Assembly (NCBI RefSeq): GCF_001194135.2
Contig: NC_068982.1
Coordinates: forward strand, 107,144,064 to 107,208,063
Reading direction: 5' to 3'
DNA length: 64,000 bases
DNA from: Octopus bimaculoides
Lineage: Eukaryota
Each line of letters opens with the position of its first letter. The stretch's first letter is position 1. Below are positions 9,993-57,748 of the stretch, piece after piece. The notes under the pieces were generated by a model. It was not told the origin of the DNA and did not search any database. It worked only from the letters and a program-made list of their open reading frames with translations. Both the position numbers and the translations under genes were made by a program.

Positions 9993-10090
9993 CTTGTACG
10001 TTGTTTCACTTTACTCATGAGTGTTTCCACGTCATCATCAGACATTCCTTTGATTTGTTGTAAGAAAACAATTTCGTAGCGTGCAACGAT
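9993..10090 (-). CDS. DNASE1: DNase I-family gene, second coding exon
   Basis: Acceptor tttgttttacag|ATC, phase 0, matching exon 1. Translates IVARYEIVFLQQIKGMSDDDVETLMSKVKQRT+AG versus human ILSRYDIALVQEVRDSHLTAVGKLLDNLNQ. Donor AG|gtattt is phase 2, as in vertebrate DNASE1. Length 98 nt versus 89 nt in human. Confidence 0.85.
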
Positions 10091-10384
10091 CTGTAAAACA
10101 AATATAGAAAGAATGATAAATATTGTTAAAAAAATCTGCAAGAAATTTAATTCAGGGCAGAGTACTTAATAACATGAAAGAGCCTGGAAATATCTGTTTA
10201 TTCAGATGATGGCACACACACACACACACACACACATGCACATGCTCACACGTAGTTGACTCTCCTGAAAAAGTACTCAATCCGAAATGTGTGTTGGATT
10301 TTCCACTCTCCACAGCAAGTTCACAGTACTCTTATGGTCGATTCTACGATATATATATATATATGTATGTGTGTGTGTGTGTGT

Positions 10385-11260
10385 GTATACAAGGCACGAT
10401 GGCTAAATTGTCGCCATTTTATATTTTTAATTTCGCGTATGCACATTGTTTTTGATTTTGTCGACTACACAGCATAATAGGGTCAGTTGGGCACCGTCTG
10501 TGAGAAAAATAGCATTATGACGCAATTCACTCTGCCAGAAATTTGGAAACATGGTGTACTGCTTGGCATTCCAGCCGGAAGCTCCAGCATGAACATTTCA
10601 GAGTTTTTGGGTGTCAATTTGAGGTCAGTGCAATCTGAGAACATATACCAATGTGATAAAAATCAAACATCCAGTCAACATCATGGTCTTTGCAGTGATC
10701 ACTAGTGATGGCGATATTATGCCTCCACTCATCTTCCCACACGGCTTCAAACTCAACACGGAGGCCTACATCAAGTGCTTGGAGGAGGTAGTGCTGCCTT
10801 AGATCAAGAAGGTGGCTGCTGGAAGACCCTATGTCTGGCAACAGGACTCTGCACCATTCCACACAAGCAGGAAAACCCAGTCATGGCTGTCAGACAATTT
10901 CTGCGACCACACAACCCCTAATATCTGGCCACTTAACTCCCTAGACTGTAACCTCCTTGATTATTATGTGTGTGGTGCAGTTGAGCGAGAGACCAACAAA
11001 ACTCCTTGTAGCACCAAAGATGAACTGAAGGCAAGGATTATGGCAACATTCACCACCGTAAACAAGGAGACCGTCCAGAAAAGTTACATGAAGTTCCGAA
11101 GTCGTCTGGAGGCTGTGATTGAAGCCAATGGCAATTTTATTGAATAAATTTACTCTTTAGTATTTAAAGATATTTTTATGCAATTTTGGTAAATATATCT
11201 GTTAAAATGAGATGTCAGAGTTATTTTCATTTTTGCGTAATTTAGTTTATTCACTGCATT
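10385..11260 (+). mobile_element. Internally deleted maT (DD37D) Tc1/mariner-superfamily transposon
   Basis: ...HPVNIMVFAVITSDG...YVWQQDSAPFHTSRK...WPLNSLDCNLLDYYV. Exactly 37 residues separate the second and third catalytic Asp. One in-frame stop and a large N-terminal deletion. Ends in a (TA)n run. Confidence 0.88.
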
Positions 11261-11299
11261 CTGTGTATATATATATATATATATATATATATATATATA

Positions 11300-53573: not shown

Positions 53574-54594
53574 GGTATAGGTAGATGAGACGGGCATCGG
53601 CTATGACACGTTTCAGGGACTCCGAGATGAGTGAAAGGAAGAGAACAAGTAATCCTCTTGCAATCGAGTAGACTTCGCTAAAAGCATTAAATTAGACTGG
53701 CTGGCTAATTTAAGCCTATAATCCAAGAACAGAAACGGTCATTCCTATTGACTTCCACTCTAAATGTTTCTAATAAGACTTCCACTGATAAATTTCACTA
53801 ATGAAGTTTTAATTGATCCACAGTTATACTGGCAGAAACTTGTCCAGCGTGCGGTCCAAATGAACACTATTTATACCATTAATCCTTGAAATCGACGGTT
53901 CTCAAACTGGCAAATACCAGCCCAACATACCGCCCAACTCCACCCCACTCCACCCACTCCACCCCACTCCACNNNNNNNNNNNNNNNNNNNNNNNNNNNN
54001 NNNNNNNNNNNNNNNNNNNNNNNNNNNNNNNNNNNNNNNNNNNNNNNNNNNNNNNNNNNNNNNNNNNNNNNNNNNNNNNNNNNNNNNNNNNNNNNNNNNN
54101 NNNNNNNNNNNNNNNNNNNNNNNNNNNNNNNNNNNNNNNNNNNNNNNNNNNNNNNNNNNNNNNNNNNNNNNNNNNNNNNNNNNNNNNNNNNNNNNNNNNN
54201 NNNNNNNNNNNNNNNNNNNNNNNNNNNNNNNNNNNNNNNNNNNNNNNNNNNNNNNNNNNNNNNNNNNNNNNNNNNNNNNNNNNNNNNNNNNNNNNNNNNN
54301 NNNNNNNNNNNNNNNNNNNNNNNNNNNNNNNNNNNNNNNNNNNNNNNNNNNNNNNNNNNNNNNNNNNNNNNNNNNNNNNNNNNNNNNNNNNNNNNNNNNN
54401 NNNNNNNNNNNNNNNNNNNNNNNNNNNNNNNNNNNNNNNNNNNNNNNNNNNNNNNNNNNNNNNNNNNNNNNNNNNNNNNNNNNNNNNNNNNAGCCGCTAA
54501 GTTACGGTTGTCAAGCGGTAGGAAGGCGGGGGGGGGGACTATTACAGACACTGAGACATTCAAACATGCATTATATATATATATATATTCTTTT

Positions 54595-55015
54595 ATTCTT
54601 TTACTTGTTTCAGTCATTTCACTGCGGCCATGCTGGAGCACCGACTTAAAGGGTTTTAGTCGAAGAAATCGACCCCGAGAATAATTCTTTGTAAGCCTAC
54701 TACTTATTCTATCGATCTCTTTTACCGAACCGCTAGGTTACGGAGACATAGACACACCAGCATCGGTTGTCGAGCAATGGCGTTGGGGGTACAAACAAAC
54801 ACACACACACACACACAAATACGAATACAAATGCATATATATATATATATATACGACAGGCTTCTTTCAGTTTCCATCTACCAAATCCACTCACGAAGCT
54901 TTGGTAGACTCGAGGCTATAGTAGAAGACATTTGCCCAAAGTGCGACGCAGTGGGACTGAACCTGGAACCATGTGTTTGAGAAACAAGCTTCTTACCACA
55001 CAGCCACGCTTGCAC
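54595..55015 (-). mobile_element. Near full-length OR/CORE-like SINE
   Basis: Complete head, CORE-like segment, internal TG/TA run and tail. Confidence 0.8.
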
Positions 55016-57595
55016 CATGTAAACTTAATTAAACACGACAGTTTGTCCACCTCACTTTCGATCCTTAGAGGCCTATTTCCCTATCAGAAGCACTACTCTA
55101 GACTCAAACTTCCTCTTTTTCACTCTTCACTAAAATGAACAAATAACTAAATAAATTAATAAAATATAACAATGTTACTGTAATCTGTTATATCTAGTAA
55201 TAGTTTTTTTGCAGGAAAAATTAACAAATAAAATATGCATAACAAAAAATTATTTGAAAAAATTTAAAATAAAAGCATTCCAATCAAAATATTAAGTGTG
55301 TTTTAGATAGATAGATAGATAGATAGATAGATAGATAGATAGATAGATAGATAGATAAATAGATAGTGGGACTGTTTATTCTTTCCATCTTCAACTGAGG
55401 CTTATGATGTTCAGTATCAGGATTTGATGAAAATATACATACACACACACACTCAGACTTGTATGTAAATATGTATGTATGTATGTATGTATGTATGTAT
55501 GTATCTATCTATCTATCTATCACGCTCTCTTTCTTTATATATATGTATATATANNNNNNNNNNNNNNNNNNNNNNNNNNNNNNNNNNNNNNNNNNNNNNN
55601 NNNNNNNNNNNNNNNNNNNNNNNNNNNNNNNNNNNNNNNNNNNNNNNNNNNNNNNNNNNNNNNNNNNNNNNNNNNNNNNNNNNNNNNNNNNNNNNNNNNN
55701 NNNNNNNNNNNNNNNNNNNNNNNNNNNNNNNNNNNNNNNNNNNNNNNNNNNNNNNNNNNNNNNNNNNNNNNNNNNNNNNNNNNNNNNNNNNNNNNNNNNN
55801 NAGAGAGAGAGAGAGAGAAAGAGAGAGATGCGCGCGTCCCATTCCTTTCCACTTAGATTTGTGTTGATGCATAACAAAAAAAAAAAAAATCAAAAATACT
55901 GTGGAATAATAAAAGTAAATGCTATATCATACAAATATCATACTATAAATACTATATTATTGCTAAAATTACTTGAAAGTCTATTTATAGCCCTACTCTT
56001 TAAAATCTCATTCAGATAACACCGTAAGTAAGCTGTAATTATAAACACTAAGTATATAGCATTATATACAGAATATAATTGTTCTTATAACACATAACAT
56101 AAAATTCCATGTGTGAATATCAATATTCTTAAGAGAATTCTAAAGAGCCTGGTGCTTCTGAAAATAAACCAATATTCTGAAGAGAACTGTAGAGTGCGTA
56201 TTAAGTAGATGTAATCTCTTGGCAATCCAAGGCCTCAACTCGGTATCGATTCTCGGTGGTTAGCATTCATGTAGTTATGTCACTGATATTATTTAGAAAG
56301 TTATAAGCGTCACACACGTTCTTATTTGCCCATAGTTGTAGGTCCGAAGCCTTGTGGTTATGTAAGAAATCGATACTCAACGGAAATCTATAGATTCTGA
56401 TATCAAATTCGAAAACGAAATTCGATAAAAGATACACACTGATCTGCATCATGCAACATCAAATTTTGTACAGACCTTTATATTTTTATATGAAATTCTA
56501 TTTTTATATCTGAACATATATGAAATACACATAGTATATTATTCTCTACCGATTTAGAGATATTAATACTAAAAATTTATATGACTTGAGTATATAAATT
56601 TATTTACACAGTTATATAATTTAATACGATTTTCCGTAGAGATCTATATTGTTTAATATGAAATTTTATCCGTACACCATGGTAAATAAAACGAAAGATA
56701 GTGGACGCTCAAAATTCTTATTCTAACTCTTTAATATTTAATGCTTCAGTCTGTCAGCCATAGAGTATAACCACGGCAGTTGTTAGCTGCACTTTGCTGG
56801 GGGGGGGGGAGGTAGGTGCACATTCCACTTCATAATATCCTAGTGCTGATGAAGCCAGGAAAAAGAAATTGTTATAATGCAAACAGAACGTCTTTGTTTG
56901 GACGCTGTATTATAGCGAGAATTCTTTCTACATAGCTTACATGTATCTCGGAATCGCTAGTGTGTACGTGTCCCACGTACTACATAACAGCCTTGTGTAC
57001 AGGTGCAATATTAGATAAGAGTTTAGCAGCACATTAGAACATATATTGCAGCAGCTTGCACAGGTAATTTCTGCGCAAATCAATCTCATCTATAGACAAG
57101 TAGACTACTACAGAATAGCATTACTATTATTGATATATTAATGTGTATCTCAATATAACCACATAAACATAGATAGATATGAACAAAACAAAAAAGAAAA
57201 GAAAAGAAAAGAAAAAGAGAAGAAACGAAAAGAACGAAAGAAACAAAGAAACAAAGAAACCAAGATAATTTGTATCGTCTGCTAGAAATTAAAAATTATA
57301 AACGCAAGAGATCGTTTTGGAAAGTGGTGGTGGTGGTGGTGGTGGTGACGGGAATGAATGAGTGTTACGACAAAAAGTGAAAAGGCAAATTAATAGCACA
57401 TTTCAACTGAATAAATGTAGCAGTAAACTATCTTTAACAAATTATCCCCTTAAAAATAAACGAAGTAAGAAAAATGTTTTTCGATTTTACTCTCCTATGT
57501 AAGTTTAGAAAACATAAACGATAACTACAGATACGAACATGCGTACACATATATAGGAAAAAGGAAAAACAAAACAAAACAAATGTAATATTTAC

Positions 57596-57748
57596 CTTAA
57601 AAAGCACACCAACAATGGCTTTGTTGTCTATTTTAGAAGGATTAAAATCTTGGACGTTCAAAGCTCCGATACGCGGGAATGTAGCGTAGGATAGAGGGAC
57701 AATAGTCAGTAATAAAAGACATTTGAGAAATTGGTTATCAGTGGGCAT
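57596..57748 (-). CDS. DNASE1: DNase I-family secreted endonuclease-like gene, first coding exon (signal peptide plus mature N-terminus)
   Basis: Translates MPTDNQFLKCLLLLTIVPLSYA|TFPRIGALNVQDFNPSKIDNKAIVGVLFK. It has a hydrophobic signal peptide, then an ungapped match to DNase I LKIAAFNIQTFGETKMSNATLVSYIVQ (N7, Q9, F11, K15, N18 kept). Ends AAG|gtaaat, a phase-0 donor at the same codon as the vertebrate DNASE1 intron. Start context is gcaacATG. The symbol denotes family, not proven orthology. Confidence 0.88.

Follow-up and report, generated by a model that had tools for sequence, protein, structure and literature searches.

The window analyzed here, 64,000 nt of the Octopus bimaculoides genome (CM046602.1:107,144,064-107,208,063), contains the 5' end of an intact seven-exon gene of the DNase I family. 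The gene product (XP_014772757.1; P0024, 316 aa) carries the automatic database name 'deoxyribonuclease gamma'. Judged from its active-site residues, the protein most likely cannot, or can barely, cut DNA, and we consider it probable that the gene encodes a conserved octopod 'dead' nuclease, which lost both Mg2+-binding carboxylates and was kept for a non-catalytic role.

The two coding exons in the window (Table 1) join in frame to give MPTDNQFLKCLLLLTIVPLSYATFPRIGALNVQDFNPSKIDNKAIVGVLFKIVARYEIVFLQQIKGMSDDDVETLMSKVKQRT, an 83-residue peptide identical to the N-terminus of XP_014772757.1. The peptide had no match in a word-indexed protein search and none in Pfam; an exhaustive HMMER search led to an Argonauta hians protein (310 aa, 60% identical) and from there to P0024. 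The gene models used were those of NCBI and of the O. vulgaris annotation. Exact protein-to-genome mapping placed the gene on seven coding exons of 153, 98, 69, 101, 262, 94, and 174 nt, which span 90.6 kb of CM046602.1 (GCA_001194135.2) and are separated by introns that are all GT-AG. Of this gene, the window covers the first two exons, all of intron 1 and the greater part of intron 2. Exons 3-7, which encode E100, H151, T185, N187, D227, D265, and H266, lie outside it, with the start of exon 3 located 388 nt past the left end. Neither a tblastn search with bovine DNase I (used as a probe only) nor motif scans detected further exons in the window, in agreement with the mapping of exons 3-7 outside it. 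Exon 1 encodes the signal peptide together with the mature sequence as far as DNase I position 27, and exon 2 contains YEIVFLQQIKG, a degenerate form of the YD..QE.RD motif. The preliminary description of this locus had joined the same two exons and aligned them without gaps to mature DNase I. That join and alignment were confirmed (residues 26-66 against DNase I residues 2-42), and the substitutions it listed, D33E, E39Q, R41K, D42G, and G12N, are all present.

The active site was compared in an alignment of four octopod proteins and 23 other animal DNase1-family sequences, using bovine DNase I numbering. The octopod proteins were those of O. bimaculoides, O. sinensis (XP_029658198.1), O. vulgaris (CAI9717104-6), and Argonauta hians; the O. 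sinensis and O. vulgaris orthologs belong to the 90% cluster of P0024. Nine residues (N7, E39, E78, H134, D168, N170, D212, D251, and H252) were invariant in all 23 of the other sequences. Six of these (N7, E78, H134, N170, D212, and H252) were kept in all four octopods. The D168 position was occupied by Thr in all four octopods (Thr185 in O. bimaculoides), and the E39 position by Gln in the three Octopus species and by Glu in Argonauta. At the D251 position, O. bimaculoides has Asp, both O. sinensis and O. vulgaris have Val, and Argonauta has Gly. Further octopod changes were found at R41, D42, R213, F6, D33, A171, and S250. Of 37 columns with at least 92% conservation among the other family members, twelve were changed in one or more octopods and none in P0005, the nearest intact relative (described below).

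Two of these substitutions, E39Q and D168T, fall on metal-binding residues. In DNase I, Mg2+ sub-site IVa is formed by D168, D212, and H252 and sub-site IVb by N7 and E39, and single mutants of Glu39, Asp168 or Asp212 in the bovine and human enzymes have very low activity (PMC2987838). One carboxylate is gone from each sub-site in the Octopus protein, and the very low activity reported for single Glu39 or Asp168 mutants makes a pseudo-nuclease the most likely interpretation. The codon for Thr185 is ACA in both Octopus and Argonauta and GAT in P0005; the identical ACA codon points to one ancestral D168T event. The pattern of Val and Gly at D251 implies two independent losses. The preliminary description had pointed to the loss of Glu39. 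E39Q is fixed in three Octopus species, so it is not a read error, but it is a later change of the Octopus lineage. D168T is the event common to all four octopods and probably the one that inactivated the protein; it is the one replacement found at the other catalytic positions that had been singled out for inspection (H134, D168, D212, and H252).

Homology to the DNase I family extends beyond the two exons in the window. Searched against PDB chains, the 83-residue peptide matched members of the DNase I family exclusively (best E 5.7e-4), and a full-length phmmer search aligned residues 26-274 to 7KIU (DNase1L3; E=1e-40) and to 4AWN and 1DNK (DNase I; E about 1e-33). An AlphaFold model predicted from a 42-sequence alignment had a mean predicted local distance difference test score (pLDDT) of 88.1 and a predicted template modeling score (pTM) of 0.82. 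All of the top ten Foldseek matches of this predicted structure in PDB were DNase I or DNase1L3, with target-normalized template modeling (TM) scores of 0.87-0.92; the best matches to DNase1L3 and DNase I scored 0.89-0.92 with a root mean square deviation of 1.8 A. Neither P0024 nor its Argonauta ortholog matched Pfam PF03372 (Exo_endo_phos) at E<=0.01, and PF03372 did match P0005 and the canonical Octopus paralog. We read the miss as sequence divergence, and the homology stands regardless.

The gene product resembles DNase I and DNASE1L3 (4AWN, 2DNJ, 7KIU) in its identity of about 30%, full-length homology, fold and signal peptide, but it differs from them at E39Q, D168T, R41K, D42G, R213Q, and Y76D. 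DNASE1L3 also has a basic C-terminal tail, which the Octopus protein lacks, having a hydrophobic tail instead. In a neighbor-joining tree, the Octopus protein grouped with cephalopod and invertebrate sequences and away from the sampled vertebrate members, and on this placement XP_014772757.1 is not orthologous to vertebrate DNASE1L3 or DNASE1L1. Invertebrate DNase1 sequences were previously found to cluster together outside the vertebrate clade (PMC9208542). Loss of Ca2+ site II and of actin-binding residues was considered as a sign of degeneration and rejected, because the same positions also differ among active invertebrate members; actin binding has been described as a novelty of mammals (PMC9208542). 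By net charge and isoelectric point of the domain, the octopod proteins could not be told apart from their active relatives.

The cysteines of the domain are partly ancestral and partly specific to the clade. C173 and C209 form a disulfide in DNase I. The aligned residues, C190 and C224, are kept in all four octopods. A C-x2-C-x3-C arrangement (CQYCNDEC; P0024 residues 190-197, exon 5) follows the NxDC box in the octopod clade and in P0005 only. Its extra pair, C193 and C197, is specific to these sequences, and the two cysteines may form a clade-specific disulfide.

Octopus has a second, canonical member of the family (O. sinensis XP_029657844.1, O. vulgaris CAI9717910.1, and O. bimaculoides XP_014770889), in which all nine catalytic residues are kept. 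In O. bimaculoides, it is located at CM046602.1:154,200,745-154,230,365, on the same chromosome and 47 Mb from the window gene. The two gene products are 33% identical. The genes have four intron positions and phases in common, so they are old paralogs produced by DNA-level duplication. The canonical DNase1 resembles the window gene product in its signal peptide, its hydrophobic tail and a stalk rich in Thr and Ser, but it has the full catalytic set and a match to PF03372, and the window gene product has neither. XP_014770889 is annotated at 241 aa (300 aa in an older model) and lacks an N-terminus; its O. sinensis and O. vulgaris orthologs are 335 aa long and start with a signal peptide, so that the canonical gene is probably modeled incompletely in O. 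bimaculoides.

The four octopod proteins formed one clade in the neighbor-joining tree (bootstrap 100), with P0005 and P0029 as its sister (bootstrap 100). P0005 and P0029 are transcript-derived sequences from Logan assemblies of SRR27666061/75/79/80 and SRR24189498/504. No catalytic residue is lost in these two sequences, which differ only at R213Q and D42N, and they resemble the octopod proteins in the CxxCxxxC following NxDC, an MxxDxVExxMxKVK stretch and a hydrophobic tail. The octopod proteins were 42% identical to P0005; for comparison, the canonical Octopus protein was 47% identical to cuttlefish-like proteins. P0005 and P0029 show the canonical condition that the octopod gene has since left. 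It is plausible that P0005 is the ortholog in another cephalopod lineage, in which case the catalytic decay would be octopod-specific.

The gene is intact in all four species: the reading frames are 310-316 codons long, and neither the splice sites nor the sizes and phases of the exons are disturbed. In the comparison of O. bimaculoides with Argonauta, nonsynonymous divergence (dN) was 0.23 and synonymous divergence (dS) 0.86, and their ratio (omega) was 0.26-0.29 by three methods; the corresponding proportions of differences were pN 0.20 vs. pS 0.51 (Fisher p=9e-17). The comparison with P0005 was saturated and unusable for dN/dS. Within Octopus, constraint was gauged by protein identity rather than dN/dS: O. 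bimaculoides and O. sinensis were 92.5% identical in this protein and 93.8% identical in the canonical paralog, so the two genes are under about equal constraint. The substitution pattern indicates that the gene is maintained by purifying selection and is not a pseudogene.

The gene product enters the secretory pathway, as predicted from its N-terminus. By inspection, the signal peptide has an n-region, a hydrophobic core (CLLLLTIVPL) and small residues at -3 and -1, and homology to mature DNase I begins at residue 26, just past the predicted cleavage site. The N-terminal helix was of low confidence in the AlphaFold model. After the domain comes a stretch rich in Thr and Pro that carries a single N-glycosylation sequon (N281), and the model has a disordered linker (residues 287-297) and then a terminal helix (residues 298-315). 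The protein terminates in ...TTTNGGSNLVIEISLGLLCMTLLLL, a hydrophobic stretch with nothing after it. In this tail, small residues (NGGS) precede a short hydrophobic segment, a pattern that on inspection resembles a glycosylphosphatidylinositol (GPI)-attachment signal. The protein is probably membrane-tethered, by a GPI or tail anchor, rather than freely secreted. The earlier proposal of a secreted protein with an intact signal peptide and conserved splice sites stood with respect to the signal peptide and the splice sites, but free secretion is less likely in view of the hydrophobic C-terminal tail. Expression in gland, skin or ink, also raised there, is purely speculative. Similar hydrophobic tails in the canonical Octopus paralog and in P0005 suggest that the tail is an older cephalopod feature.

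Such a domain organization has a vertebrate counterpart. DNASE1L1 (DNase X), which is GPI-anchored and membrane-bound, also has a DNase I domain, a short linker and a terminal C-terminal hydrophobic segment, but it is an active nuclease, and the Octopus protein lacks two metal ligands and is not its ortholog. Some papers pair DNASE1L1 with the term 'GPI-anchored', and one of these is titled 'membrane-bound DNaseX'. The O. vulgaris annotation includes two alternative isoform models: P0026 (CAI9717104.1), which has an alternative N-terminus and an alternative C-terminus, and P0027 (CAI9717106.1), which starts at the Met within exon 2. Should these models be real, the isoforms would be soluble or not secreted.

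A sequence of events consistent with these results can be proposed. The protein would enter the secretory pathway by its signal peptide and fold like DNase I, and its short hydrophobic tail would hold it on the outer face of the membrane as a GPI- or tail-anchored protein. D168T came first, since it is shared by Octopus and Argonauta and so predates their split; E39Q followed in the Octopus lineage only, and D251 was lost on two separate occasions, to Val in O. sinensis and O. vulgaris and to Gly in Argonauta. The first inactivating hit would have relaxed constraint at the other catalytic positions, the remainder of the protein staying constrained, and selection would retain the protein for binding. 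Our best guess, offered with low confidence, is that the ligand bound at the cell surface is extracellular DNA or some other molecule that carries phosphate. The specific form of this proposal, a cell-surface receptor or trap that does not cut the extracellular DNA or other phosphorylated ligand it binds, is tentative and, in our estimate, unlikely to hold. The broader suggestion in the preliminary description, a DNase I paralog that is still made but catalytically altered, gained support from the combination of E39Q, D168T, and purifying selection.

Several observations weigh against a conserved pseudo-nuclease. Six of the nine catalytic-site residues are kept in all four octopods, and the pocket could still do chemistry; in principle, the Gln and Thr side chains could still contact metal or water. 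The GPI or membrane-anchor assignment was made by inspection, and the O. vulgaris isoform P0026 has neither the signal peptide nor the tail. The timing of the catalytic loss is only bracketed.

The alternative that survives best is that the protein is still an enzyme, a weak or re-tuned phosphodiesterase with an altered metal, pH or substrate requirement, for which RNA, single-stranded DNA, nucleotides or phospholipid head groups could be the substrate. Such an enzyme would use His134, His252, Glu78, Asp212, Asn7, and Asn170, with Gln63 and Thr185 reaching the metal through water. All six of these residues and the C173-C209 pair are present in every octopod, the pocket was modeled at very high confidence, and the gene is under purifying selection of the same strength as the canonical paralog. 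Members of the wider fold have also changed substrate before, and Nocturnin with NADPH and TDP2 are among the fold matches. However, retention of six of nine residues is no better than the overall Octopus-Argonauta identity of 60%, and two carboxylates are lost here where the loss of either Glu39 or Asp168 leaves DNase I nearly dead (PMC2987838). Variation at Asp251 (D, V, V, G) and drift in 12 of the 37 conserved columns look like a release of catalytic constraint rather than re-tuning. To our knowledge, every known enzyme of this fold uses the carboxylate equivalent to Glu39. We regard a re-tuned enzyme as unlikely, and a pseudo-nuclease kept for a non-catalytic role remains the preferred reading.

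Far less likely is decay of the gene toward a unitary pseudogene, with a frame that is still intact by time and chance. The stepwise loss of catalytic residues and the failure of the Exo_endo_phos Pfam model to match the protein would fit decay, and the protein collection showed no copies of the Octopus protein derived from transcriptomes. This last absence is uninformative, since the cluster of the canonical paralog also has no transcriptome-derived members. Intact frames, splice sites, exon sizes and phases in four species at a dS of about 0.86, together with an omega of about 0.27 and p=9e-17 against neutrality, largely refute decay.

The quality of the assembly bears on whether the exons were joined correctly. 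The window contains 13 runs of N, ten in intron 1 (3,294 N), one in intron 2 (10 N, 9255-9264) and two upstream of the ATG, one of which (10 N, 57955-57964) is about 210 nt before it. None of the 13 gaps touches an exon or a splice site. At the gap-free Argonauta hians locus, the orthologous exons 1 and 2 (162 and 98 nt, with the same phases) are joined over a 38,401-nt intron that contains no N, and the internal exon sizes (98, 69, 101, 262, and 94 nt), phases and GT-AG sites are identical in Argonauta and Octopus. No second copy of exon 1 or 2 was found in the sequenced part of the locus. A canonical exon 2 hidden in intron 1 was sought and rejected, as neither the sequenced part of the Octopus intron nor the Argonauta intron, which is free of gaps, contains one. 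The gapless alignment to DNase I, the lack of a second exon copy and the gap-free Argonauta join make a missing exon in a gap unlikely. An artifact, either a wrong join across the 47.5-kb interval with its ten gaps or a base-call error at codon 39, is scarcely credible given the same exon pair and phase in Argonauta and Gln39 in three independently sequenced Octopus genomes.

Table 1. Positions in the window of the exons, introns and other features of the gene, with details of each.
Feature	Window position	Strand	Details
Coding exon 1	57596..57748	-	153 nt, 3' end phase 0; residues 1-51 of P0024
Exon 1 limits	57748 to 57596	-	ATG 57748-57746; donor AAG/GTAAAT
Signal-peptide coding part	57683..57748	-	Residues 1-22, MPTDNQFLKCLLLLTIVPLSYA; predicted cleavage SYA/TF
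N31 (= DNase I N7)	codon 57658-57656	-	In exon 1
N36 (= G12N)	codon 57643-57641	-	In exon 1
Coding exon 2	9993..10090	-	98 nt, end phase 2; residues 52-83 and two bases of codon 84
Exon 2 limits	10090 to 9993	-	TTTTACAG/ATC at start; donor AAG/GTATTT
Codon CAA = Gln63 (DNase I Glu39 position)	10055..10057	-	GAA in Argonauta and in the nearest intact relative
Intron 1	10091..57595	-	47,505 nt, GT-AG; ten assembly gaps, microsatellites, retrotransposon remains
Intron 2, first 9,992 nt of 10,380	1..9992	-	Rest beyond the left end
TATATAT, TATA-like	57809..57815	-	61-67 nt upstream of ATG, read directly; possible core promoter

The acceptor of exon 2 reads TTTGTTTTACAG/ in the window. Many of the gaps are flanked by microsatellites, including (CA)n, (TA)n, and ACATACAT-type runs, the latter translated as YIHTYIHT; examples are the regions 14106-14526, 33088-33773, 55459-56019, and 59721-60613. 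The gaps probably mark collapsed simple repeats and not missing unique sequence. Intron 1 also contains the remains of a retrotransposon without long terminal repeats (39128-41212, forward strand), which include the gap at 40084-40475. An open reading frame within it matched the reverse transcriptase model RVT_1 at 39541-40083 (forward strand; E=1.5e-14) and is cut by the assembly gap. A separate reading frame (46162-46602, reverse strand) had a weak match to zf-RVT, a zinc-binding domain of reverse transcriptases (E=2.4e-4; 22.1 bits, under the Pfam cut-off of 27.5 bits). A dispersed repeat resembling a short interspersed element (GGCGAGCTGGCAGAATCGTTAGCACGCC...) is present in intron 2 in at least three copies (3014-3121, 9230-9337, and 9556-9663), the second of which spans the 10-N gap, and a related piece is located at 712-771. 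ARAGORN called no tRNA genes in the window. In Argonauta, intron 2 (BAAFZT010000040.1 locus, approximately 52366-72234) harbors a tandem repeat of 4,950-nt period, present in at least five copies and noticed as weak, evenly spaced tblastn hits.

Previous work has stressed the constancy of this family. Catalytic and Mg2+-binding residues are nearly perfectly conserved in DNase I-family enzymes across animals (PMC9208542; PMC2987838), a 'remarkable conservation' in the words of one survey, which also reported one DNase1 gene in molluscs, citing an octopus (PMC9208542). Octopus genomes contain two DNase1-family genes, one canonical and one degenerate, and the published count of one is corrected accordingly. 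Literature searches on the accessions, on octopus deoxyribonucleases and on pseudo-nucleases turned up neither this protein nor any pseudo-nuclease of the DNase I family. Comparable cases are known elsewhere. Fungal Ssd1, of the RNase II family, is a nuclease fold that stayed under selection after catalytic loss beside an active paralog (PMC8097288), and Pseudomonas Crc, deposited as catabolite repression control protein, was among the same-fold matches. Ssd1 and Crc, however, belong to other families, are intracellular and act on RNA.

A paralog that lacks both metal-binding carboxylates and has remained intact since before the split of Octopus and Argonauta is an unreported departure from the conservation of the family. 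The name 'deoxyribonuclease gamma' is misleading, as it spreads an enzymatic annotation to a protein that is probably not an enzyme. If the protein is inactive but binds a ligand, it would be a natural example of an extracellular nuclease turned into a surface binding protein and a candidate for how cephalopod cells handle extracellular DNA. A receptor or trap, if that is what it is, could act for example in innate immunity, fertilization or chemotactile sensing, and the DNase I family proper would then have its first described pseudo-nuclease. The order of losses, D168T, then E39Q, and D251 twice, would in that case provide a natural series for the change from nuclease to binding protein.

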